A stretch of 64,000 nucleotides of DNA, from positions 372,001 through 436,000 of the forward strand of contig CDROCS010000506.1 of NCBI GenBank assembly GCA_977020255.1. Direction: 5' to 3'. The stretch's first letter is position 1, and the number at the start of each line of letters is the position of its first letter. This DNA comes from Obrimoposthia wandeli (taxonomy: Eukaryota). A program made the translations under genes and the position numbers. A model generated the notes under the pieces. That model saw only the letters and a list, made by a program, of their open reading frames with translations, was not told where the DNA came from and made no database searches. Below are positions 6,215 through 19,436 of the stretch, in pieces.

Positions 6215-9200
6215 CTAAACCACTTTTTCAGGCTCTGTCTTTATTGATGCTAGGTTCAACTTATCTACAGCGACTGGTCTAGCAAACCAAAAACCTTGAC
6301 CGTATTCACAACCAAGTTGCTCTAAAAATTCACACTCACTTTGCTCTTCAATACCTTCAGCGACCACTTTCAATTCAAGTTCTTTCGTCATCGCGACAAT
6401 CGACTTAATCACCTTACGGGCATTATCATTATCACCAATGCGAGCAATAAAACTGCGATCAATTTTTAAATAATCGACAGGGAAGTTGATCAAGTATTTC
6501 AGCGATGAATAACCAGTACCAAAATCATCAAGGTGGATCCGCACGCCCAAATCACGTAATTTTTGTAACGTTTCAGCGACTAATTCAGTGTTTTCCATAA
6601 ACACACGTTCGGTGATCTCGATATGCAAATATTCACCGGCCATATTATATTTTTGTAGTTCACTGGCAACCAATGCAACTAAACTTTCTGCATGACCGGG
6701 GGCAAACTGCTTGGACGATATATTAATCGCGGCATGAATATATATGCCCTCTGCTTGCCAAGCTTGTAACTGCATCACCGTTTGCGTGATCATCAAATTA
6801 CCAAAATCAATGACTACCCCGACTTCTTCAGCCAAGTCAATAAAGTCACCTGGATACACCAAACCTTTCTCGGGGTGATTCCAACGGATTAACGCTTCAA
6901 CACCAATCACTTTTTTACTGTCAATTTCAAAAATGGGTTGGTAATAAGAGATAAATTCATCTCGCATTAAACCACGATAAAGCTCTTGCTCTAGCACCAA
7001 ACGCGCTGTGACCTTGGTGTTTAATTCTGGAGTATAAAACTGACTATTATTACGACCTAGTTCTTTGGCGTGATACATCGCCGTATCAGCATTTTTAACT
7101 AACGTTTCCACATCAGAGCCATCATCAGGTGTTAAGGTAATACCGATACTCGCAGAAATAATGCCATCATGTTTATCTTGCAGTAGGTAAGGTTTTGATA
7201 TTTCTGCAATCAATTTATCCGCTAATACTTTCGCTTCATTAACATACTTAATTTCAGACAGGATCACCACAAACTCATCACCACCTAAACGACAAACAAT
7301 ATCAGTCGCTCGCACATTTTGTCGTAAGCGATCACTTACATGGCAAAGCAATTCGTCACCAGCACTGTGGCCGAGACTATCATTAATCAACTTAAAATTA
7401 TCGAGGTCGATAAACATCACTGCCGCCATAATTCGGTAGCGTTTAGCGTGTTCAATAACTTGCTTCAATTTCTCTAAGCCCATCTCACGGTTAGGTAAGT
7501 TGGTAAGGGAATCAAAGTTAGCTTTCACCCATATTTCATCTTCATAACGTTTCCATTTATCTAAATTTTTCAATAAATAAATGTAATGACTAATATTCCC
7601 GTCCTTATCTTTCACCATCGCGGCGGAAATAAATACCGACGTTACCTCATCATTTTTATCGGTTATTTTAACTTCGCTTTCCCAACAGCCTTTTGATATG
7701 AGGGTTTGCATGATGGCCTTATGTACTATTTTTTGATCATACTTATCAACCAATAAATACAAGATACTTTTACTCAATACATCTTGTTTAGTAAACCCTG
7801 TCATGCGGGTAAATGCTGGATTTATCATTTCAATATTATTGTGTTTATCGCTCACCACCATGCCTTCGCCAGCACTATTAAAGAATGCACTCGATAACAA
7901 ATGTTCATGCTGTGTCACGTCAATAGAAGTAACAATATCGTTAAAGGTATCAACGACATCCGTAATTAAATGTGAGTTGGTGTGAATATCGAGTTTTTTA
8001 TGACTGTCTGACGAATTAATGCTTTTCATCTTTTCAGTAAACATACGCAATTCTTGAATCACTTGATTGACCGTGCGATAAGCTAAACCGACACCCACTA
8101 AAAAAACGGCTAGGATCAGTGTTATCTCAAGCCACAACTGTTGTTGTTTTTCATTTTCAAGACCCTGTAACGTACTGATATATTGTTTACTCGTTGAATC
8201 AATGATCCCTTCAATGATCTCAATCCGTTGTGTTGACCCTTCCCACCAGTCTGCAAAGCGAATATGTAAAATATCGTCACGTACAAAGTCCATATTTTCG
8301 ATAGCGCGATTTTCTAGTACAAGAAATCTTGCATCTATGCCTCTGATTTCCTCTTTATCAATAACTACTTTATCTAAACCTTCGACAACCTGCCTGTAAT
8401 GTTCAAGAATATCGAATAATACCGCGATCTGAGGATTGGCATAATCCATCTGCTTATACGCAGACAACATGCTAAAAGCATCTTGATAAACCGTCATAAA
8501 TTGCTGGTAATAAACTTGGTCTCGACGTAATAAATAGCCTTTGAAATAGTGGTTAATCAAACCAAAATACGAGCGACCTTCGTGTAATAGATCTTGTTTT
8601 TTACTTTCAAATTTGGCTTGATTCATGATCTTGTTTAATTTGCTATCACGTCCGTAAGCCGCAATTTTACTCAGATCACCTTCAAGTGCACCGGGTATTA
8701 AGCGCTGTAATTGTAAAAAGATCAGTTCTTGCTTGTCACGTAATCCAAACAATTGTGCAAGTGCAACTTGATTGAAATCTTGGGCGTTATAAATCCCATG
8801 AAATGAACCGCGTTCTAAACTGGCAAATTCTTTAAACCAGATCAAAGGAATGTAAAATTCCAAATCCAACAATAACGCACTATCAGATACTTGTTCTTGT
8901 ATTGCGCTGATAAAATTAAGGTTACTGGCGACTACTTGGGTGTAATTGCTAAACTGGTCGCGATTGTCTGCATCTATAGCACTACGTATTGATGTGATAC
9001 GACGCTGCAGGTTAATGACATTATGTTGCTGTGCTAATCGCTTTACCGTTTGATTGTCAGCAATTAATTTGTTGAATAAGATGAATTGCTGATCGGTTTG
9101 TTGACGCTGTGTATCAAGCTGTTGTTTTAAGCTTTCATCATTGGTCGTTATCAGCGATGCGCTAAGGCCTCGCTCTGCTTGTATCTCATGCACTAAGGCA

Positions 9201-9358
9201 TTAATCGACATTGATTGTTGCACCACTAAAATAGCGGCATCTGCATCCCTTGCAGACTTAATGTGTTGGCCAATATAAATAGCAATAACAACACAAACAA
9301 ACAGTGTAGGTATAGTAAGAGATATTATTAATTTTGCTTTAACTGAGAGGCTTCTCAT
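6215..9358 (-). CDS. NIT-domain membrane sensor with PAS-GGDEF-EAL (c-di-GMP cyclase/phosphodiesterase)
   Basis: NIT-like LVHEIQAERGLSA, KEFASLERG and WWEGSTQRIEII; PAS (NPAFTRMTGF); RLGGDEF; EALIRW, DDFGTGYSSL, LKIDRSF, VVAEGIE. Confidence 0.9.
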   Translation of the reverse strand: MRSLSVKAKLIISLTIPTLFVCVVIAIYIGQHIKSARDADAAILVVQQSMSINALVHEIQAERGLSASLITTNDESLKQQLDTQRQQTDQQFILFNKLIADNQTVKRLAQQHNVINLQRRITSIRSAIDADNRDQFSNYTQVVASNLNFISAIQEQVSDSALLLDLEFYIPLIWFKEFASLERGSFHGIYNAQDFNQVALAQLFGLRDKQELIFLQLQRLIPGALEGDLSKIAAYGRDSKLNKIMNQAKFESKKQDLLHEGRSYFGLINHYFKGYLLRRDQVYYQQFMTVYQDAFSMLSAYKQMDYANPQIAVLFDILEHYRQVVEGLDKVVIDKEEIRGIDARFLVLENRAIENMDFVRDDILHIRFADWWEGSTQRIEIIEGIIDSTSKQYISTLQGLENEKQQQLWLEITLILAVFLVGVGLAYRTVNQVIQELRMFTEKMKSINSSDSHKKLDIHTNSHLITDVVDTFNDIVTSIDVTQHEHLLSSAFFNSAGEGMVVSDKHNNIEMINPAFTRMTGFTKQDVLSKSILYLLVDKYDQKIVHKAIMQTLISKGCWESEVKITDKNDEVTSVFISAAMVKDKDGNISHYIYLLKNLDKWKRYEDEIWVKANFDSLTNLPNREMGLEKLKQVIEHAKRYRIMAAVMFIDLDNFKLINDSLGHSAGDELLCHVSDRLRQNVRATDIVCRLGGDEFVVILSEIKYVNEAKVLADKLIAEISKPYLLQDKHDGIISASIGITLTPDDGSDVETLVKNADTAMYHAKELGRNNSQFYTPELNTKVTARLVLEQELYRGLMRDEFISYYQPIFEIDSKKVIGVEALIRWNHPEKGLVYPGDFIDLAEEVGVVIDFGNLMITQTVMQLQAWQAEGIYIHAAINISSKQFAPGHAESLVALVASELQKYNMAGEYLHIEITERVFMENTELVAETLQKLRDLGVRIHLDDFGTGYSSLKYLINFPVDYLKIDRSFIARIGDNDNARKVIKSIVAMTKELELKVVAEGIEEQSECEFLEQLGCEYGQGFWFARPVAVDKLNLASIKTEPEKVV

Positions 9359-9724
9359 AATGTAACTTATAACTCTTTATAATGATTTATAAAAAAGTGT
9401 ATTAACACCTAATCCATTGATATTAATGCGTAATAAACATTCAAGATTAACGCCATAGTAATACAGTCAACGCTGACAATGCAAAGCATAAAACCACTCT
9501 TACAGCATCTAATAATCATCATTTTTTATAACAAAATTATCTTATAATACTTAGTGATTCAGAGAAGGTCAGCAAGATACTAAAGTGTGCAATATCACTC
9601 ATTTTAGTACCTTGCCGACTCATTTTAGCCCCTTGTTTACGCACTGTTATTTCCTTTATTTGGTAATTAAGGGATACTTATCCTCTTGACCACAACACCT
9701 CCCCCATCTTTAAGGCCAATAGCG

Positions 9725-10597
9725 ATGTCAAATATCCTCTTACTTGCAAACCTAAACTGTGACCGGGTGTTACAGCTAGACAGACCATTAGCAACCGGTG
9801 GGCGTCATTATTATGCTGATAATGGCCGGCGTTTAGGGGGTGGCGGTGCCAATACCGGATTAGGTTTAATTTATGCGGGTCATAAAGTGGCGTTAGTCAG
9901 TCAAGTCGGGAATGATAAGACCGCCGATTGGTTATTGGCAGAAGCCAGTATTCAAGGGTTAGACTGTAGTTTATTGCAACGTAATGATCTGGACACACCG
10001 GAATTATTATTAATCATGACACCCGATGGTGAGCGCACGATTATACGTCCGCAACGCCCTGTTTTTACCCTCGGACCAGCGCCCGACTTTAGCCAATGGC
10101 AGGCGTTATATATTAATTCATCCGCCGTTGGTTGCGAGCAATGGGCAAAAAGCGCACTTGAATCGACCTTAGTCATCGCGCAATTAGCCAAAGACAACCG
10201 CCTCCGTCCTTGCCATGTCTTGATTTCGTCAAAATCGGATATGTGCAATCACAATATTAATAGTAACGATAATACTCTCGACCATGAATCAATCTGGCAA
10301 TATGGCCTGCAGATTTGTGGGGATCAGTTACGTTATTTTATTATTACCGATGGTGATAATGGTGCGGTGGCTTATAGTCAAAGCCAGCCTATTGCAGTGC
10401 CAGCAGTGGTTGCCAGTGTGGTTGATACCACGGGGGCTGGTGATGCGTTTGCATCAGGATTAATACATGGATTATTGGCGCAACAAGATATTGCTAACGC
10501 CATGACAACAGGTTCAGAATGGGCCGCAATCGCAGTAACGACAGCCAGTTCTATACCTGGGGTAGAGTTACAGCAATATTTAACTAAACCTGTTTAA
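9725..10597 (+). CDS. PfkB-family carbohydrate kinase
   Basis: GGGGANTGLGL N-terminal signature and VDTTGAGDAFASG C-terminal signature. ATG at 9725 is preferred over TTG at 9686. Confidence 0.9.
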   Translation: MSNILLLANLNCDRVLQLDRPLATGGRHYYADNGRRLGGGGANTGLGLIYAGHKVALVSQVGNDKTADWLLAEASIQGLDCSLLQRNDLDTPELLLIMTPDGERTIIRPQRPVFTLGPAPDFSQWQALYINSSAVGCEQWAKSALESTLVIAQLAKDNRLRPCHVLISSKSDMCNHNINSNDNTLDHESIWQYGLQICGDQLRYFIITDGDNGAVAYSQSQPIAVPAVVASVVDTTGAGDAFASGLIHGLLAQQDIANAMTTGSEWAAIAVTTASSIPGVELQQYLTKPV

Positions 10598-10743
10598 CTA
10601 AATAATAGTATCTCAACGCACCATCGATTAAAAATTAATACCTCCCAATAAATATAAATGATAACCATTATCATTTATATTTGCATTTAATTTTATAGTT
10701 ATTTATTATCCTCCCCCCTATATTTATAATAAGACTATAAAAA

Positions 10744-12402
10744 ATGAAAAAAACAACATTATCTATAGCTTGCATCTGCTTTTTACTCACCGCATGCGAT
10801 GATTCGAATTCAAATCTGGTGCAAACGACAACGACACCTACACCTACAACTACAACTACACCACCAACAACTACACCAACAACTACAACAGCGGTCAAAA
10901 TTAAAGCCAGTGATATCACGCCAATATCTATTACACAGATAAAGTTTAGCGCTCCGGATGTTACCGCTACCAATACTACTGAGGTCAAAAATATCAAAAC
11001 CAATTTTGGTGAAGCAAGTATAAATCTGCTCACGGGTGAGATAACTTTTAGTCCTTACGCTGCAGATAGTAGTAACATCTTAAGTGCCGAAAGCATTGCA
11101 GCTCAACACAACTACAATTTTAAAATAAGCTATCAAATAGATAACACGATTTATCAACTTAATGGCTCTGTATTACCGCTATATAACGACAAATCAAATA
11201 AGCCAGCAGCACGCTTTAGTAAAATAAGCCTGAATGGAACACCGTTATCAGCTGAAGATCAAGCGCGACCAGCCAATGCTAGTGACTGGCACTGTGTCAC
11301 CGACAATAGCAGCGAATTGATGTGGCAAGTACCGCAGGCAAATGGTGAATATGCATTTGATGCGACTTACTATTGGGGTGATCGCACGGTCAACCATCGT
11401 GATTACAGTGAAGCCAGTTGTATACTTGGCGGTGACTGCAATACCGATAATCTGGTTGCAACAGTAAATACACAAAAACTGTGTGGGCGTTCCGACTGGC
11501 GTTTAGCAACGCGGGCAGAATGGCAAACACTATTAGATAAAAAATTGTTTGATGAAGATTCAAAACAATCACCCATTAACAACTTCTATTTTCCGTATGT
11601 CGATTCCAATTATGATGAAGCATATTGGACTAACTCATTCACTATTTATGCCAATGGTCACGATGAAAAACATGTGGCAGGTGATTGGCAAGGCTCAAAC
11701 GCCCTTGTTGGTGATGCCCATGTGATGTGGATGACTGAAGATTTTGACTTTGCCAATATGCCGCCACGTTCAACCAATGAACCGCACTTCACTATGTTAG
11801 TAAACGGCACTGTTATTCCAGATAAAAAAGATAATGAAGTCCCGGAGATAACAGCACTATTAGCACAGCAAGATATCGCCGAAGGCGTTGATGAAAATAT
11901 TGATTGGCAATCACGCTTTGTTAAACACGGTGAATTAGGACAAGCGTTAGCAGACCAAGACGCGCTAGAGTGGAATTGCACTTCAGATCTAGCATACAAA
12001 TCAGCATTACCAAACACGCAAATTTTATGGCAACGCATCAGTAAAACTGAACCACTGAAAAATCACGCGCAAGCCATAGAATACGTTAAGCAAATCAATC
12101 AAGCGAATGAATGCGGACAAACCAACTGGCGCTTACCAACCGAGAATGAATTACAGAGTCTCTTGGTGAATACCTCAATATCAGGTTACCCAAGTTCACG
12201 TGCAAGCTATGTGACCAGTGTGTTTGATGATACAAACGTAGATTATGATAGCTATTACTGGACTTCAACTATCGAATCATATTTTCCTAAAACAAAACAC
12301 GGCGCAGTCCCATTTCAAGATGGATTTTCTGTAAGTAGCCAAATCGCTAATACCGAAATGATACGTGTGCGCCTGATCTCAACAACGAGATTACAACCAT
12401 AA
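10744..12402 (+). CDS. Lipoprotein with Thr/Pro linker and two DUF1566 (Lcl C-terminal-like) domains
   Basis: Lipobox LLTA-C. DUF1566 motifs: CVTDNSSELMWQ, LCGRSDWRLATRAEWQTL, ECGQTNWRLPTENELQSL, YYWTST. Confidence 0.8.
   Translation: MKKTTLSIACICFLLTACDDSNSNLVQTTTTPTPTTTTTPPTTTPTTTTAVKIKASDITPISITQIKFSAPDVTATNTTEVKNIKTNFGEASINLLTGEITFSPYAADSSNILSAESIAAQHNYNFKISYQIDNTIYQLNGSVLPLYNDKSNKPAARFSKISLNGTPLSAEDQARPANASDWHCVTDNSSELMWQVPQANGEYAFDATYYWGDRTVNHRDYSEASCILGGDCNTDNLVATVNTQKLCGRSDWRLATRAEWQTLLDKKLFDEDSKQSPINNFYFPYVDSNYDEAYWTNSFTIYANGHDEKHVAGDWQGSNALVGDAHVMWMTEDFDFANMPPRSTNEPHFTMLVNGTVIPDKKDNEVPEITALLAQQDIAEGVDENIDWQSRFVKHGELGQALADQDALEWNCTSDLAYKSALPNTQILWQRISKTEPLKNHAQAIEYVKQINQANECGQTNWRLPTENELQSLLVNTSISGYPSSRASYVTSVFDDTNVDYDSYYWTSTIESYFPKTKHGAVPFQDGFSVSSQIANTEMIRVRLISTTRLQP
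10825..10890 (+). repeat. Low-complexity Thr/Pro-coding tract
   Basis: ac(a/t/g)/cca codon runs encoding TTTTPTPTTTTTPPTTTPTTTT. Confidence 0.9.
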
Positions 12403-15011
12403 TGACAACACACACATTGAAAAACATACAACGTCAGCTCATGCTCATCACCTGCTGCGCGCTCTTAGCTGCATGCGGTAGTGATAGCTCAGATGATACA
12501 GTGGCCAACTCTGGTGCTGGAGCAAATACTGGTACAGATTCAGGTAATAAGCCGACTTTACAGTTAAGCCCCCGGATCCAGCTAACCCAAGGGCAGACAA
12601 CAACAAAGCAGTACGCCTTAACCGCAACGCAAGAGTTACGCCTGATCCAACCGGGATTAAAGGGTAATGCGAGTGTACAAGGCAGTACATTTACCTATCA
12701 AGCGGATGACAATGCCCAAGGCGCAGACCATGTTAAAATAGCTATTATTTCAAACGATAAAATTGAAACGATAAACTGGCTTATCAGAGTCAATAAGCCA
12801 ACCCCCCGCTTCACAACCTTAGCGCTCGAGGACCCGACTAAAAATAAAGCCTGGCAATGTATTGCCGATGCTCAAACACATCAGGGTCTGGTTTGGGCAA
12901 CACCGCTACAACCGACATCACAAACATATGCGTGGGGAGATTGGCCACCGACCCTGCCCGCCTTTCAAGCGCAGTGTCAGTTCACCGATAGTGACGGTAA
13001 CAGCCAAGCATGTACCACTGATAGACTGGTTGAATACGCTAACCAGCAAAACTGGTGTGGCCGCAATGACTGGCGCTTACCGTCAAGTTATGAAATGAAG
13101 GAACTGGTTAGTGAGCAAGATTATGCACTCGATAATAATCAAGCGGCAATTGACCCTTACTTCTTTGGTGAAACAAGCTTTGAAAGCTACTGGCTAGCGG
13201 ATGATAATGGACAGCCACACAGTGACAATATCGCCCCAACATTCGACTTTGCCACCGGGCGTTACACACCCGTAATGCAAAACAAACGCAAACCTAAATC
13301 AACAATGCTTGTTAGTGGGGTAAAACGTGATCCGACATTACCCTCGGAACAAAAAAAACCACAAGCAGAGAAAGACAGTTTTATCCGCTTAGACAATAAC
13401 GGTCAACCTTTAGCTAAATCACAGCAAAGTGACGACTACAGCGATACACCTTGGCGTTGTCTAGATGATATGCGTGGTTTAGTACGTGATAATTTCTATT
13501 TACGTGATAAGCAGTTTTCCAATGTCTATTGGTTAACTCCAGATCCAGAAGATATCACCAACACCACTCAGACATTATCAAGACAGGTTGGGGTTTCCGA
13601 GCTCATCAATAAGGTTAACCAGGGGCAATTTTGTGGCCGTCAAGACTGGCGATTACCTACAGCCGATGAACTGGCGATGTTGCTCTATAAAGGCGAGCAA
13701 GAAAGTAATTACAACTTGTTATATACAGCATCGTTAAATCAACCTGAATCAGGTGATTATTGGATTAAAACAGCCGCTGATTATGGCTTGTATAGCTTAC
13801 CAGCAATGGCTAGTTTACAACCAAAATCGACGACCGACGCTGACATTGGCCGTGTACTACTGATTGCCACAGAATTTGAACAACGTGCAACGGAAGATCC
13901 ACGTTCGGTAAACAATCACAGTCGACCTAATTTCAACAATCTAAGACAAGTTTATGCCAGTAATAGCGATAACTGGCCACAAGCGTTTGTCGATGATGCA
14001 TTGAATTATCAAGAGTTAGGTGTGATGCCTAAACCCAACTTCCCCAATGACAATCCCTATAGTGAGCGCAAGGTTAGCTTAGGCGAAAAGTTATTCTTTG
14101 ATCCGTTCTTATCGCAAGCGGGTGATGTTAGTTGTTCGAGTTGTCACGATCCAAAACTCGGCTGGGGAGATGGAAAAGAAGTGTCTATCGGTCATGACCG
14201 TCAGCGTGGAAAGCGTAATGCACCCACCATAGTCAACAGCGCTTTTCTACCGACATTATTCTGGGACAGTCGCGCCGCAACGTTAGAGCAGCAAGCATTA
14301 ATGCCCATTCAAGACCCAGTAGAAATGGCTGAAAACTTGCCTCGTTTACTTTCTCGACTTAATGCGCACCCACAATATCCAGCGCTGTTTCAACAAGCCT
14401 TTCCGGAAAATGGCATAAATGCAGATATCACAGAACAGCAATTAGGCATGGCACTGGCGACTTTCCAGCGCACTATTATTAGCAATACGAGTCGCTTCGA
14501 TACGTTTGTCACTCAGGCTGATAATAATGGCGATACCAGTGCACTTTCTGATACAGAATTGTGGGGATTAGATGTGTTTCGTCGTAATGGCCGCTGTGTG
14601 AATTGTCATATGGGTGCAGAATTCACAGACCATAAAATGCAAAACGTCGGATTAACTTATTATCAAGGATTCTATGAGGATCTCGGATTATACAATGTTG
14701 ACGCTCAGCCAAGTAGCGTAGGTAAATTTAAAACACCGTCATTACGTGATGTGATGAACAACCATCCGTGGTTCCACAATGGATTACTCGATACCATGGA
14801 AGGTGTGATATCTATGTATTCAGCGGGTATGGCTGACAATGCGCCATTTGGTTGGAATAAGTATGATCCGATGTATCCGGTATTATCCAAACAGATAAGA
14901 CCGCTCAATCTAACGCTTGCAGAATCGCAGGCATTACAAGCCTTTCTCGAGACAATCACGGCACCGACTCGTCAAGTACCAGCGAGCAAAACGGAGTTAG
15001 CATTAAATTAG
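12402..15011 (+). CDS. Lipoprotein: two DUF1566 domains fused to a C-terminal di-haem cytochrome c peroxidase/MauG-family domain
   Basis: Lipobox LLAA-C; WCGRNDWRLPS and FCGRQDWRLPT; LGEKLFFDP, CSSCH (14133-14147), RNAPT, LFWDSRA, CVNCH (14595-14609), FKTPSLR, PWFHNG. Start overlaps the upstream stop (TAATG). Confidence 0.88.
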   Translation: MTTHTLKNIQRQLMLITCCALLAACGSDSSDDTVANSGAGANTGTDSGNKPTLQLSPRIQLTQGQTTTKQYALTATQELRLIQPGLKGNASVQGSTFTYQADDNAQGADHVKIAIISNDKIETINWLIRVNKPTPRFTTLALEDPTKNKAWQCIADAQTHQGLVWATPLQPTSQTYAWGDWPPTLPAFQAQCQFTDSDGNSQACTTDRLVEYANQQNWCGRNDWRLPSSYEMKELVSEQDYALDNNQAAIDPYFFGETSFESYWLADDNGQPHSDNIAPTFDFATGRYTPVMQNKRKPKSTMLVSGVKRDPTLPSEQKKPQAEKDSFIRLDNNGQPLAKSQQSDDYSDTPWRCLDDMRGLVRDNFYLRDKQFSNVYWLTPDPEDITNTTQTLSRQVGVSELINKVNQGQFCGRQDWRLPTADELAMLLYKGEQESNYNLLYTASLNQPESGDYWIKTAADYGLYSLPAMASLQPKSTTDADIGRVLLIATEFEQRATEDPRSVNNHSRPNFNNLRQVYASNSDNWPQAFVDDALNYQELGVMPKPNFPNDNPYSERKVSLGEKLFFDPFLSQAGDVSCSSCHDPKLGWGDGKEVSIGHDRQRGKRNAPTIVNSAFLPTLFWDSRAATLEQQALMPIQDPVEMAENLPRLLSRLNAHPQYPALFQQAFPENGINADITEQQLGMALATFQRTIISNTSRFDTFVTQADNNGDTSALSDTELWGLDVFRRNGRCVNCHMGAEFTDHKMQNVGLTYYQGFYEDLGLYNVDAQPSSVGKFKTPSLRDVMNNHPWFHNGLLDTMEGVISMYSAGMADNAPFGWNKYDPMYPVLSKQIRPLNLTLAESQALQAFLETITAPTRQVPASKTELALN

Positions 15012-15128: not shown

Positions 15129-15887
15129 TTAACGTTCACCCACCAAGTATAAATAAGTGTGTTTCGCGCTGTACTTAGGCGACATATGTACGCCGTAATA
15201 ACAAGGTACCTCGTGCTCACAAACTTGATTAATCACACTAAAGCCCGCATTGATTTTACGTATTGAAATAGGTTCTTTGGTGACAATAATCATCGCTGCA
15301 GAATCACCCATACTGTCGTTGGCAGCGATAGACAATGATTCATCTTCACACGACGCTTCAAAAAAGCGTAACGATTTAGAATTTGAAACTAATGAAGAGA
15401 TATCACTGATGTTGAATTTAAGCAGGTTATTCTGATTCAACACAGTCGCCATGTGATTAACAAAGCGTAATGCAGCAACCGAATGATAGGTACTCATGTC
15501 ATCAATATTTAACCATATCGTGGCGATATAATTATCATCGATGATCTTACGCCTAGAAATATAACCCACAGTGTCTACGTGCGCTTGTTGATAAACAACC
15601 ACGACTATGTCTGATTGTAATAATAAGTCTGATTGTAATAACAAGTCCGATTGTAATGACAAGTCTGACTGTAACAAATGGCTATCACACGTGGCGTCAT
15701 GTTCCGCAGTAATAGTATGCAGGCTAATATCATCATTATTTTCGATATCAACTAACAGAGGATGCTCCATAAATGATAATACTGTAATACGGCTCAGTTC
15801 ATCATTTTTGAGCACTGTTTGGTCCATAGCTCGTTGCATATTCCTTTGCATGTTTTGCTGCATATTTCGCGGCATAGTCTGGTTCAT
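15129..15887 (-). CDS. Hypothetical protein with degenerate FtsZ/tubulin-like region and internal tandem repeats
   Basis: The C-terminal half aligns by eye to the FtsZ H7-T7-C-terminal domain; there is no GGGTG(T/S)G motif. Confidence 0.55.
   Translation of the reverse strand: MNQTMPRNMQQNMQRNMQRAMDQTVLKNDELSRITVLSFMEHPLLVDIENNDDISLHTITAEHDATCDSHLLQSDLSLQSDLLLQSDLLLQSDIVVVVYQQAHVDTVGYISRRKIIDDNYIATIWLNIDDMSTYHSVAALRFVNHMATVLNQNNLLKFNISDISSLVSNSKSLRFFEASCEDESLSIAANDSMGDSAAMIIVTKEPISIRKINAGFSVINQVCEHEVPCYYGVHMSPKYSAKHTYLYLVGER
15610..15676. repeat. 18-nt coding tandem repeat (about 3.7 copies; LLQSDL units in the minus-strand ORF)
   Basis: tctgattgtaataataag / tctgattgtaataacaag / tccgattgtaatgacaag / tctgactgtaaca. 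Confidence 0.9.
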
Positions 15888-16103: not shown

Positions 16104-17579
16104 CTACGCTTCATCATTGACATAAACACGGGCTTTTTGCTCACGTTTTTTAGCCAAGCTATTCAAGTGTAAGCCAGACAAGGTCAAGGCAATACCAGTA
16201 ATTGAACCAATTAACGCTAATGAACCAAACCACACTAAACCAACAAGCGTTAAGGTTTCTCTCTTCACTTCTTTATAGTGATCAACATTATCAATATAAG
16301 ACGCCATACGATAAACCTGATTAGATAAAGCCATCGTATTTGCTTCAATCTCAATCACACGAATATCATAACGTAACTTCATATTCGTTTGCTTGATCTC
16401 TTTAATGTAGTCCTTCTCATTTAAGAACTGAACATCAGCCTGATCACGCTTAATTTCTAAGTTACGTAACGCAGTCGTTTTATTCTGAGCTAGTTTTACT
16501 TGTTTCACCGCTAGATTACTATTACTCGCACTCACCGCATTTCTATAACTACGATTAAGCTGTTTTACTTCGTCGTTTTTCTGCTCGATCATATCGTCTT
16601 TCAAGCCGAGTAAATCATTATAATAATCATCAAGGAATTGAACTGACTCTAAATCAGGGCTGTTGTTTTTAACAACAATAGTGTTGTTATTAATGTTGTT
16701 AAGCTGAGTTTCAACATGGCGAATTTTTTCATCGTAATCTTTTTTCACTGCCGGTGAAGTAAAGAAATTCGAGTCATCTAACGCAACAATCTTGTCAGCA
16801 TTTAGCTTATCAAGCTGTACTAACAAACGTGTACGTTCAGCTTGTACTAGATCAGCATTACCTTGAGTACGTTCCATCGAAGATTTAAAGCGTTGCTCTT
16901 TCTTCAATGATAGCTCTTGTAATAGCTCTGATTTTTCAATTTTAAGCTGAATTAATTCTTCTTTTTTCGCTGCTAAGGCTCGGCTTAACTGCGGAATATT
17001 TTTTGATAAACGCTTATTACGTCTTACTTCATTAGCGTATTGCGATTTATAGTTTGCATTGACTACCGAAGTATCATTGTCAATTTGCTGCGTTTTCATA
17101 TTATAGTCTTGCAGTGCAATTTCTATATTTTCTTCATTAATTTTGATCTGATTTTCAATTTTACTGATCTCAATTTCACTGATGTTAATTTGACTATTAA
17201 TCGATGAAAATGCACGTTCAAAACCATTCAGTAAAGTTTCAAAGGTGATAAGACACAAGAAACTAATGATCAACAGATACATCGGGAATGATTTACGTGA
17301 ATGCCAAAGACCAATTACAAAAGGAATTTTGGTTAACTCCACCAGCGAAATCATCACAAAAGGCGCTGCCAATGTGAATGCGCTAGTCAAATTATTGTCA
17401 CTTGTCATTAATGATACCGAAATACAAAGACCGATAAATACCACGATGATCTCAACTAACCAGGCGATTTTACGTAAAAATCGACTATGTTTGTTCAGTT
17501 CAGTAACATCCTTATCGTCTACATTACTGGCAATTTGGCCAGTTCCCATAATATCGCTCATTTGTTTAACATACCTCAA
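16104..17579 (-). CDS. Membrane-anchored long coiled-coil protein (N-terminal TM helices, about 300 aa coiled coil, C-terminal TM)
   Basis: Hydrophobic segments near aa 38-115 and aa 440-470 flank a K/E/Q/N-rich heptad region. Confidence 0.75.
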   Translation of the reverse strand: MRYVKQMSDIMGTGQIASNVDDKDVTELNKHSRFLRKIAWLVEIIVVFIGLCISVSLMTSDNNLTSAFTLAAPFVMISLVELTKIPFVIGLWHSRKSFPMYLLIISFLCLITFETLLNGFERAFSSINSQINISEIEISKIENQIKINEENIEIALQDYNMKTQQIDNDTSVVNANYKSQYANEVRRNKRLSKNIPQLSRALAAKKEELIQLKIEKSELLQELSLKKEQRFKSSMERTQGNADLVQAERTRLLVQLDKLNADKIVALDDSNFFTSPAVKKDYDEKIRHVETQLNNINNNTIVVKNNSPDLESVQFLDDYYNDLLGLKDDMIEQKNDEVKQLNRSYRNAVSASNSNLAVKQVKLAQNKTTALRNLEIKRDQADVQFLNEKDYIKEIKQTNMKLRYDIRVIEIEANTMALSNQVYRMASYIDNVDHYKEVKRETLTLVGLVWFGSLALIGSITGIALTLSGLHLNSLAKKREQKARVYVNDEA

Positions 17580-18167: not shown

Positions 18168-19436
18168 GTGATGATGAGCACGACGCTGACAGCGACGCCA
18201 AGTACGTGGCAACAACGAATGAAATCTTTAGGCCCAGGGATCATGATGGCAACAGCAGCCGTTGGTGGATCACATTTAGTGGCATCAACCAAAGCCGGGG
18301 CAACGTATGGTTGGCAACTAATTGGATTGATTTTACTGGTAAACCTGTTCAAATATCCCTTCTTCCGTGCAGGAGTGCAGTACACCTTAGGCACAGGTAA
18401 AAGCTTGATCCAAGGTTATGCTGAAATGGGTAAAGGCTATTTGTGGCTGTATACCGGTTTAAACGTCATATCTGGCATTGTAAATACTGCCGCATTGTTA
18501 CTCTTTAGTGCCAGCTTACTTGGCTACTTTCTGCCTTGGGCTATCCCGTTAACAACATTAGCAGCGATTGTATTAGCTATTTGCTTAGTCATCTTACTTG
18601 CTGGTCATTTTAAAGCGCTGGATAAATTGTCTAAAGCGATTATGGCCGTCTTGGTTGTCACCACAGTAGCAGCAGTCGTTATTGCACTTAACCAAGGACC
18701 GGTAGCGCCAACAGATTACGTTAGCCCTTCGCCTTGGCAAGTATCTGCGATTGGCTTTATTGTGATCATGATGGGTTGGATGCCAGCCCCGATTGAGATC
18801 TCAAGTATTACCTCGCTGTGGTTGAAGAACCAACAAAAGGAACAACAGGTCACTGCCGACTCAGCGTTATTTGATTTTAATGTTGGCTACATAGGCACCG
18901 CATTGCTCGCTGTGGCTTTTGTTATTCTTGGCGCATTGGTATTACACGGTAATGGCGCCGAGCTTAAAAGTTCCGGTATTGGTTTCTCACATCAGTTAGT
19001 GGGCATGTATGCGCAAACAATTGGCGAATGGTCAGGTAACTTAATTGCGATCGTGGCTTTCTTTTGTATTTTCGGCAGTACCATTACCGTGATAGATGGT
19101 TATTCACGTGCATTGGCTGAATCGCAACTGTTAATCACTAACAAAGCATTAGGACAACGTAAGTATCATCAAGTGTGGATGATTGCAGTGAGTGCATGTG
19201 CCTTAGCTATCTTGTTATTCTTTACCTCATCACTCATGGATATGCTTAACTTTGCGATGGTATTAGCGTTTATGACAACGCCTATCTTTGCACTGATTAA
19301 TTACCTGTTAGTGACTCGTACAGAACTGCCAACAGAATTAAAACTCTCCACCGGCATGAAAGTGTTGTCGTGGGCAGGCTTGATTTATCTGTTTAGTTTC
19401 TTGGCCGTGTTCATCTGGTGGAAGTGGTTGATGTAA
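18168..19436 (+). CDS. NRAMP-like divalent metal cation transporter
   Basis: LGPGIMMATAAVGGSHL, GATYGWQL, GWMPAP; about 11 TM helices. Confidence 0.82.
   Translation: MMMSTTLTATPSTWQQRMKSLGPGIMMATAAVGGSHLVASTKAGATYGWQLIGLILLVNLFKYPFFRAGVQYTLGTGKSLIQGYAEMGKGYLWLYTGLNVISGIVNTAALLLFSASLLGYFLPWAIPLTTLAAIVLAICLVILLAGHFKALDKLSKAIMAVLVVTTVAAVVIALNQGPVAPTDYVSPSPWQVSAIGFIVIMMGWMPAPIEISSITSLWLKNQQKEQQVTADSALFDFNVGYIGTALLAVAFVILGALVLHGNGAELKSSGIGFSHQLVGMYAQTIGEWSGNLIAIVAFFCIFGSTITVIDGYSRALAESQLLITNKALGQRKYHQVWMIAVSACALAILLFFTSSLMDMLNFAMVLAFMTTPIFALINYLLVTRTELPTELKLSTGMKVLSWAGLIYLFSFLAVFIWWKWLM

Follow-up and report, generated by a model that had tools for sequence, protein, structure and literature searches.

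A 64,000-nucleotide stretch of an Obrimoposthia wandeli assembly (contig CDROCS010000506.1, positions 372,001 to 436,000, here called the window) carries two overlapping genes for putative lipoproteins on its forward strand. Open reading frame (ORF) A (10744–12402, +) encodes a 552-residue protein with an immunoglobulin (Ig)-like β domain followed by two Lcl_C domains. ORF B (12402–15011, +) encodes an 869-residue protein that combines an Ig-like domain and two Lcl_C domains with a C-terminal di-heme CCP_MauG domain. ORF B reads as a hybrid because a peroxidase-type histidine, His598, is retained together with a MauG-type tyrosine, Tyr806, so that the surroundings of heme 1 are predicted to be peroxidase-like and those of heme 2 MauG-like. 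The favored interpretation, which is given a probability of about 0.5, is that ORF B is an envelope-anchored, H2O2-driven oxidase of the MauG/MbnH type with a macromolecular target, toward which it is aimed by its lectin-like modules, and that ORF A is its co-receptor or its substrate.

The di-heme domain comprises residues 520–869 of ORF B (13959–15008, +) and was recognized by Pfam, by phmmer against the Protein Data Bank (PDB), and by Foldseek. The Pfam score for CCP_MauG (PF03150, residues 556–706, 186.6 bits against a cut-off of 25.6) and the CxxCH motifs at residues 578 and 732 place it in the bCcP/MauG superfamily. CSSCH, CVNCH, LFWDSR, FKTPSLR, and PWFHNG, the motifs on which the initial annotation had built its assignment, were all found. 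CSSCH (residues 578–582, 14133–14147, +) marks the peroxidatic heme 1, and its histidine is invariant in 120 of 120 homologs. CVNCH (residues 732–736, 14595–14609, +) marks the electron-transfer heme 2. The inter-heme tryptophan is Trp621 of LFWDSR (14262–14264, +), which corresponds to Trp93 in MauG and Trp94 in the peroxidases. It is conserved in 109 of the 120 homologs and in 155 of 162 domain copies that were taken from the 150 best cluster representatives in a library of 1.84 billion proteins. The heme 1 region keeps the conserved Gln631, Pro635, and Glu641. Asn606 is invariant among homologs and presumably corresponds to the calcium-site asparagine of the Pseudomonas enzyme. His598 (14193–14195, +), in the sequence SIGH, aligns with the histidine of the “GH” motif that lies 16 residues past the heme 1 histidine in canonical peroxidases. 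It presumably corresponds to the distal ligand His71 of the Pseudomonas aeruginosa peroxidase; in resting canonical peroxidases, the distal histidine ligates the peroxidatic heme. This position is histidine in 101 of the 120 close homologs and in 34 of the 162 domain copies, valine or isoleucine in most Tyr-type relatives, and serine in MbnH.

MauG, MbnH, and BthA are His/Tyr-ligated, form an Fe(IV)Fe(IV)=O species, and are poor peroxidases, whereas the canonical enzymes are His/Met-ligated (PMC11892367). Tyr–His ligation has been described, and the near-infrared species is lost in the Y294H variant of MauG and the Y463H variant of BthA (PMC6405878). PDB entry 3ORV is titled as the “Y294H-MauG” variant, and Tyr294 is the established ligand. 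In ORF B, His792 of PWFHNG (14775–14777, +), the equivalent of MauG His280, is followed at +13 by Met805 and at +14 by Tyr806 (14817–14819). Tyr806 is predicted to be the sixth ligand of heme 2 and is part of the motif M805-Y806-S-A-G-M810 (14814–14831, +). The initial annotation had pointed to this distance of 14 residues and to the same distance between His280 and Tyr294 in MauG; both values are correct, the latter as read from the numbering of the PDB alignment. Within the C-terminal segment, His792 and Tyr806 pair with residues 280 and 294 of MauG (numbered from the same alignment) with no gap between them. Tyr806 also aligns gaplessly with the tyrosine of MbnH (6E1C), and the methionine of Geobacter CcpA pairs with Tyr806, again without a gap. 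When the C-terminal 96 residues are scored alone, MbnH reaches 31 bits, MauG 19, and the canonical peroxidases around 17.

Conservation points to the same residue. Tyr806 is found in all 120 homologs and Met805 in 112 of them. Among the 162 domain copies, 146 have the tyrosine, and the Met805 column is occupied by phenylalanine (77 copies), methionine (23), histidine (19), or leucine (15). The Tyr806 column itself holds methionine in three relatives and cysteine in two, so that ligand-capable residues interchange there and not in the Met805 column. The flanking Met805 and Met810 are conserved solely within a subclade of 141 leaves, which is characterized by the signature M-Y-x-x-G-M. In the column where canonical His/Met enzymes have their methionine (+14 from the histidine of FH(S/N)G), ORF B has a tyrosine, as is typical of the MauG type at the level of sequence homology. 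Heme 2 is therefore most likely His/Tyr-ligated. The proposal of the initial annotation that ORF B is not a housekeeping His/Met peroxidase appears sound in this respect, as Tyr806 is near-invariant and aligned to the tyrosine of MauG and MbnH and Met805 is variable.

The overall similarity of the di-heme domain is less selective. In phmmer searches of the PDB, the whole domain scores 154 bits with canonical peroxidases (2C1U), 146 with MbnH, 84 with MauG, and 55 with BthA. Foldseek matches the AlphaFold2 (AF2) model to peroxidases, MbnH, MauG, and BthA with E values that all fall between 1e-18 and 1e-13, and YhjA and peroxidases head the list; the fold was accordingly set aside as an uninformative discriminator between peroxidase, MauG, and MbnH. 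The best NCBIfam models are MbnH (TIGR04039, 217.5 bits against a cut-off of 362.85) and MauG (TIGR03791, 209 against 444). ORF B stays below both equivalog cut-offs and belongs neither to MauG proper nor to the MbnH family, and the same applies to all ten near relatives that were sampled. Judged from its sequence, ORF B is not an ortholog of MauG, MbnH, BthA, or a canonical peroxidase.

Among the characterized enzymes, MbnH from Methylosinus trichosporium OB3b (6E1C) is the closest relative, approximately tied with the canonical peroxidases. MbnH and ORF B have two CxxCH motifs, the inter-heme tryptophan, the Gln/Pro/Glu set of heme 1, and a tyrosine in the ligand position in common (Foldseek E value 2e-18, 32% identity), and both are encoded beside a partner protein. 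MbnH is, however, a stand-alone enzyme of approximately 390 residues without Lcl_C modules, and the partner of ORF B is an Lcl_C lipoprotein and not an MbnP homolog; neither a TonB-dependent transporter nor mbn genes were found near the pair. MauG from Paracoccus denitrificans (3L4M), the maturase of tryptophan tryptophylquinone, takes on the same fold, and its FK(T/V)PSLRN and P(W/Y)(F/M)HNG motifs match ORF B. Unlike MauG, ORF B has His598, a lipid anchor, and fused recognition domains, and no mau operon was found near it; a PfkB kinase and a GGDEF-EAL protein are encoded there alongside unknowns. The canonical peroxidases (Paracoccus pantotrophus 2C1U, Geobacter sulfurreducens CcpA/MacA, and Neisseria gonorrhoeae) are approximately 30% identical to ORF B at the 154 bits given above. 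They share with it the distal histidine, the equivalent of Asn606, the tryptophan, and the Gln/Glu pair but have a methionine in the ligand column and lack N-terminal recognition modules. The N. gonorrhoeae peroxidase is also a lipoprotein. BthA from Burkholderia thailandensis (6NX0) is an orphan MauG-like enzyme with a Tyr/His six-coordinate heme, and a C-terminal disulfide is among the features of its class. BthA has neither the inter-heme tryptophan nor the calcium site (PMC11892367), whereas W621 and N606 are both present in ORF B, and with its 55 bits it is the most distant of the solved di-heme structures matched. Of the label “MauG/BthA-type” in the initial annotation, the Tyr-type character thus holds and the kinship with BthA does not. 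For the sequence similarity network of the superfamily, the BthA paper describes peroxidase, MauG, and Burkholderia clusters only (PMC6405878). DUF1566/Lcl_C was not connected with MauG or di-heme enzymes by any paper of the searchable library, in agreement with the earlier impression that the architecture is not a characterized system.

The N-terminal half of ORF B consists of an export signal and three modules. A signal peptide with the lipobox LLAA-C25, with glycine at +2 (12402–12476, +), is followed by an Ig-like β domain (residues 58–131, 12573–12794, +, AF2 predicted local distance difference test (pLDDT) > 90), Lcl_C domain 1 (residues 148–310, 12843–13331, +, CGRNDWRLP at 219), and Lcl_C domain 2 (residues 345–505, 13434–13916, +, CGRQDWRLP at 411). 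C353, C411, W416, P419, and W454 of the second Lcl_C domain are invariant throughout the fused family. In each protein, Pfam recognizes two Lcl_C domains (PF07603, formerly DUF1566) with scores of 101.3 bits for ORF A and 75.6 for ORF B against a cut-off of 34.9; these scores and the fold match of ORF A to 8Q4E assign the domains to the family. The four CGxx[DN]WRL[PA] motifs noted at the outset are present at A247, A457, B219, and B411, with A247 ending in alanine instead of proline. DUF1566 is a C-type-lectin-like fold, and the domain of Lcl trimerizes and binds sulfated glycosaminoglycans (PMC11162425). The founding Lcl_C structure, the Lcl C-terminal domain from Legionella pneumophila (8Q4E), has PF07603 and the C-type-lectin-like fold in common with both proteins. 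Lcl is a secreted collagen-like trimer without cysteine pairs. In contrast, the Lcl_C domains of ORF A and ORF B reside in lipoproteins and have conserved cysteine pairs (e.g., C353/C411), and those of ORF B are joined to a redox enzyme.

ORF A and ORF B overlap in the sequence TAATG (12400–12404, +), in which the TAA stop codon of ORF A (12400–12402) and the ATG start codon of ORF B (12402–12404) have one base in common. Both reading frames, their lipoboxes, and the overlap at 12402 are as initially annotated, and the arrangement suggests that the two genes are translationally coupled. ORF A begins with a signal peptide and the lipobox LLTA-C18 (10744–10797, +). Residues +2 and +3 are Asp-Asp in most Moritella-type sequences and asparagine in three, and N, H, F, D, or K occurs in other genera. 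A lipobox match or a visible L-x-G-C is found in all 27 sequences of the ORF A family and in most of the ORF B family; with matches to the bacterial lipoprotein pattern [LVI][ASTG][GA]C, both ORF A and ORF B are predicted to be acylated. The mature part of ORF A has a Thr/Pro-rich tether encoded by a low-complexity repeat of ACN/CCN codons (10825–10893, +). A deep metatranscriptome signal at 10828–10890 was discarded as a low-complexity artifact of this repeat, and one DNA run shows a 9-nucleotide repeat-length variant at 10851. The tether is followed by an all-β Ig-like domain (residues ~47–161, 10882–11226, +, AF2 pLDDT ~90, β-strands only), Lcl_C domain 1 (residues 178–355, 11275–11808, +, CGRSDWRLA at 247), and Lcl_C domain 2 (residues 405–548, 11956–12387, +, CGQTNWRLP at 457). 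In the AF2 models, which were made from family alignments (mean pLDDT 80 for ORF B and 75 for ORF A), both proteins take on the same order of a disordered tether, an all-β Ig-like domain, and two Lcl_C domains, to which ORF B adds a di-heme domain that is helical.

ORF A is 25% identical to residues 1–520 of ORF B over 508 residues (E value 2e-22). The alignment runs along the whole of ORF A, so ORF B can be described as an ORF A-like module plus an enzyme, and ORF A is, by this homology, a paralog of the N-terminal half of ORF B. Pfam and NCBIfam find nothing besides Lcl_C in ORF A. Its best match among solved structures is the Lcl C-terminal domain 8Q4E (template modeling score 0.65 normalized by target, probability 1.00), with Bdellovibrio Bd2740 (C-terminal domain) in second place, and in the ESM Atlas it meets generic adhesin-like clusters of Lcl_C, Ig, cadherin, and BACON domains only, with every score below 0.9. 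The feature that sets ORF A apart from the ORF B module is an insertion of about 50 residues inside its first Lcl_C domain (residues ~300–350, 11641–11793, +, NGHD..GDWQGSN..VMWM..PPRSTNEP). This loop is very highly conserved in the alignment of 27 orthologs, with W315, W329, and M330 invariant and H306 near-invariant, despite an AF2 pLDDT below 50. If ORF A has a specific functional or substrate site, this loop is the leading candidate for it and could be metal-binding, partner-binding, or modified. The idea that partner-less fusions carry the loop in cis was rejected, as a hidden Markov model (HMM) of the loop gave no significant match among the di-heme fusions (best E value 0.67).

Lcl_C is combined with CCP_MauG in Moritella, Vibrio, Photobacterium, Veronia, Aeromonas, Chromobacterium, and Paludibacterium as well as in many metagenomes. 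All orthologs of ORF B with 86–97% identity are from Moritella species, and the window is accordingly assigned to a Moritella genome. More than 60 cluster representatives have this architecture, which recurs in independent genomes, and the junction between the Lcl_C and di-heme parts of ORF B is spanned by a contig from a DNA run. A one-off fusion or an assembly artifact, which the initial annotation had considered as a possible refutation, is thereby ruled out. One or two N-terminal Lcl_C domains are the usual arrangement. In Aeromonas, where the Lcl_C-di-heme clusters have hundreds of members, Big_2 and Lcl_C are placed after the enzyme in addition to an upstream Lcl_C-like region. A FastTree phylogeny of 258 di-heme domains was rooted at its midpoint, and the presence of Lcl_C was scored by HMMs built in this analysis. 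The fused proteins, which span Vibrionaceae, Aeromonas, and Chromobacterium, form three pure clades (3, 35, and 23 leaves) that are basal in a 141-leaf clade (support 0.988), and an 80-leaf clade lacking Lcl_C is nested among them. Strict monophyly of the Lcl_C fusions was consequently rejected, with the limit that the rooting is by midpoint only; the tree is consistent with either an old fusion that was lost later or a repeated gain. Some Vibrionaceae, such as Photobacterium sp. MCCC 1A19761, harbor paralogs of both types. The second Vibrionaceae paralog (the P0080/P0118/P0082 clade, e.g., L011 5001–7358) is a partner-less Lcl_C-di-heme protein of 770–796 residues with isoleucine in the distal-histidine position. 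A large Verrucomicrobia-type group (L016 5001–6590 and P0049–P0110) comprises proteins of ~500–530 residues in which an N-terminal LTXXQ region (Spy/CpxP-like) is fused to a di-heme domain with the same His598 and M-Y-x-x-G-M.

Orthologs of ORF A (33 matches) occur in the same organisms as the 23-leaf clade of ORF B and on contigs of identical length. Direct inspection shows the two genes side by side in Vibrio salilacus, in Photobacterium proteolyticum, in “Pseudomonas sp. HK3,” and in one JGI metagenome; they also count as adjacent in Moritella, where the loci compared were listed without their upstream gene. The genes often overlap by 4 nucleotides (e.g., L005 and L009) and their flanking genes are unrelated between loci, so that the pair appears to behave as an autonomous two-gene module. 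The gene neighborhood survey suggested by the initial annotation thus shows the pair to be conserved in the clade of ORF B itself and absent from the Aeromonas, Chromobacterium, and second Vibrio lineages; ORF A is kept beside ORF B only within the former. In Chromobacterium, a 188-residue gene without a Pfam match (L008 6372–6938) lies 62 nucleotides upstream of the solitary Lcl_C-di-heme gene on the same strand and possibly encodes a different small partner.

In the proposed mechanism, the peroxidatic heme at CSSCH would react with H2O2 with the participation of Gln631, Pro635, and Glu641. The second heme at CVNCH would be ligated by His736 and Tyr806 and linked to the first through Trp621. 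Like its counterparts in MauG, MbnH, and BthA, the tyrosine ligand would lower the potential of heme 2 and permit a bis-Fe(IV)-like oxidant. This oxidant would act over a long range on a macromolecular target and would not merely detoxify peroxide. The Ig-like and the two Lcl_C domains would serve as tethered recognition modules, and the target may be a glycan-bearing or protein component of the envelope or surface. As a catalytically empty paralog translated together with ORF B, ORF A may be a co-receptor or assembly partner that is engaged through Lcl_C–Lcl_C contacts, or alternatively the substrate via its family-specific Trp/Met loop. Of these roles, we infer the co-receptor to be the more likely and the substrate the less likely one. 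Gene structure, domains, conserved motifs, the homology of Tyr806 to Tyr294 of MauG, the spread of the fusion, and the conservation of the pair are observations; tyrosine ligation, bis-Fe(IV) chemistry, a macromolecular substrate, the part played by ORF A, and the localization are predictions. The surface location considered by the initial annotation found no support and stands as one possibility.

Several observations weigh against this interpretation. The whole-domain sequence and fold scores fail to separate canonical peroxidases from MbnH, and the retained His598 is a trait of the canonical peroxidases. The HMMER alignment to the P. pantotrophus peroxidase pairs Met805 with a methionine across a one-residue gap; this methionine is taken to be the ligand, and by our own count it lies at +14. 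Met805 and Met810 are conserved within their subclade. The distance between FHNG and the tyrosine varies among relatives (+13, +14, and +22), so the spacing by itself proves nothing, and a fixed +14 spacing was dropped as stand-alone proof of the ligand in favor of column conservation and gapless alignments. A speculative twist would be a redox-linked ligand switch between Tyr806 and Met805 (or Met810), which would combine peroxidase-style activation via His598 with MauG-style high-valent chemistry. The Y463H variant of BthA retains peroxidase activity (PMC6405878), and a Tyr-type enzyme can therefore still reduce peroxide. Any ligand of the Lcl_C modules is hypothetical here. ORF A has no counterpart beside the enzymes of the Aeromonas, Chromobacterium, and second Vibrio lineages and is therefore not a universal substrate of Lcl_C-di-heme enzymes. 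Evidence for expression is weak and consists of short, near-identical, low-depth pieces of both genes in marine and ice metatranscriptome contigs, for which carry-over of DNA is possible; among these short pieces from public RNA runs, none bridges the junction at 12402.

Some of these points would fit a membrane-tethered respiratory or peroxide-detoxifying peroxidase with a periplasmic donor, similar to the gonococcal enzyme, in which the modules only position the enzyme and ORF A is a structural paralog. Canonical peroxidases give the top whole-domain PDB score (2C1U, 154 bits) and, with YhjA, lead the Foldseek list; His598, Gln631, Glu641, Trp621, and Asn606 (as the presumed calcium-site asparagine) are kept; Met805 can be aligned to the presumed ligand methionine with a one-residue gap; the BthA Y463H variant still turns over H2O2; and the database name of the family is “cytochrome c peroxidase.” This explanation is nevertheless considered rather unlikely, as Tyr806 is invariant where most relatives have F, H, or L in the Met805 column, the ligand-bearing C-terminal segment is closer to MbnH and MauG, and poor peroxidase activity is general among Tyr-type enzymes (PMC11892367). 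That the enzyme is stably fused to two or three recognition domains and has a paralogous partner is also hard to explain with a small substrate that diffuses freely. A third option, a small-molecule or lipid/glycan oxygenase that resembles the oleate-diol synthases PA2077/PA2078 or RoxA, with Lcl_C binding the polymer or a carrier, is quite improbable. CCP_MauG-family enzymes with fatty-acid substrates exist (PMC4496055), and rubber oxygenases are treated alongside MauG in the literature. In addition, Lcl_C binds polysaccharide in Lcl, and the closest stand-alone relatives of ORF B lie in TonB-receptor operons, which suggests nutrient or metal acquisition. Genes of lipid or glycan metabolism were, however, absent beside the pair in every locus examined.

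In a further alternative, ORF A and ORF B could form a pair like MbnH and MbnP, in which ORF B oxidizes a tryptophan of ORF A (W315 and W329 being the most plausible ones) and the resulting hydroxytryptophan, kynurenine, or cross-link provides a metal-binding or adhesive function. MbnH makes kynurenine in the Trp-rich MbnP, and MauG oxidizes tryptophans of preMADH. The overlapping genes are conserved together in at least five genera with unrelated flanks, and the highly conserved ORF A loop with W315, W329, M330, and H306 has no significant match in the fusions. On the other hand, ORF A is not homologous to MbnP and a search for a WxW motif in it gave none, the Aeromonas, Chromobacterium, and second Vibrio enzymes work without it, and its modification is purely a prediction. 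The initial annotation had called the partner Trp-rich. The count of 13 tryptophans (2.4%) is moderate and equals that of the N-terminal half of ORF B (2.3%); the tryptophan content is therefore a property of Lcl_C and was discarded as a mark of a substrate. The proposal that the partner is the substrate thus found no direct support, ORF A being a paralog of the module and itself absent from other fusion lineages, and an enzyme–substrate pair of this kind is regarded as no more probable than the peroxidase. A more specific version is less probable again, namely that ORF A is a dedicated substrate in which a loop tryptophan (W329 in V-M-W-M, flanked by Met328 and Met330 and near His306, or W315 in GDWQGSN) is oxidized to give a kynurenine/hydroxytryptophan metal site or a cross-link. 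If true, the pair would have converged with MbnH/MbnP from a C-type-lectin-like scaffold that is not homologous, and protein-derived cofactors or adhesive modifications would gain a new class.

The surroundings of the pair in the window offer few clues. A NIT-PAS-GGDEF-EAL protein (6215–9358, −), a PfkB-family sugar kinase (9686–10597, +), and an Nramp-like transporter (18168–19436, +) are encoded nearby, and none of the three is conserved beside the pair in other genera. A sigma-70-like promoter match upstream of ORF A (10680–10709, +, 9 of 12 consensus positions) is a weak lead only, as the scan of the region for promoters and terminators gave no more matches than shuffled sequence. Downstream lie a 252-residue ORF with tandem LLQSD repeats (15129–15887, −) and a 491-residue Asn/Lys/Glu-rich ORF with hydrophobic stretches near both ends (16104–17579, −), both without a Pfam match. 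The closest unfused relatives of ORF B, P0154 (51% identity) and P0162, end operons with TonB-dependent receptors and surface proteins. In one of the loci (L014 1998–6167), a Cadherin/Big_9 protein, a Plug receptor, and a 78-residue ORF precede the di-heme gene, and in another (L017 1–6161) a TonB-dependent receptor, DUF4876, and DUF6850 do so. From their gene content, these operons look like uncharacterized outer-membrane uptake modules with a Tyr-type di-heme enzyme. The MbnT-MbnP-MbnH arrangement resembles them, and this context hints that this branch of the family might serve in the envelope or in acquisition.

MauG-type enzymes carry out long-range protein oxidation, but substrates are known for MauG and MbnH only, which leaves BthA and thousands of Tyr-type relatives as orphans. 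The di-heme domain alone has 16,817 matches in a 50%-identity library. The clade described here brings its own recognition modules and, in one lineage, a presumably co-translated partner with a Trp/Met loop; this reduces the range of substrates to consider, so that the question can be tested directly. With a peroxidase-type distal histidine and a MauG-type tyrosine, the clade would offer a natural intermediate in which to ask what tips an enzyme toward peroxide detoxification or toward bis-Fe(IV) chemistry. Opportunistic and fish pathogens (Moritella viscosa, Aeromonas, Vibrio, and Chromobacterium) harbor the family, and it may be speculated that an adhesin-like envelope oxidase could aid colonization.

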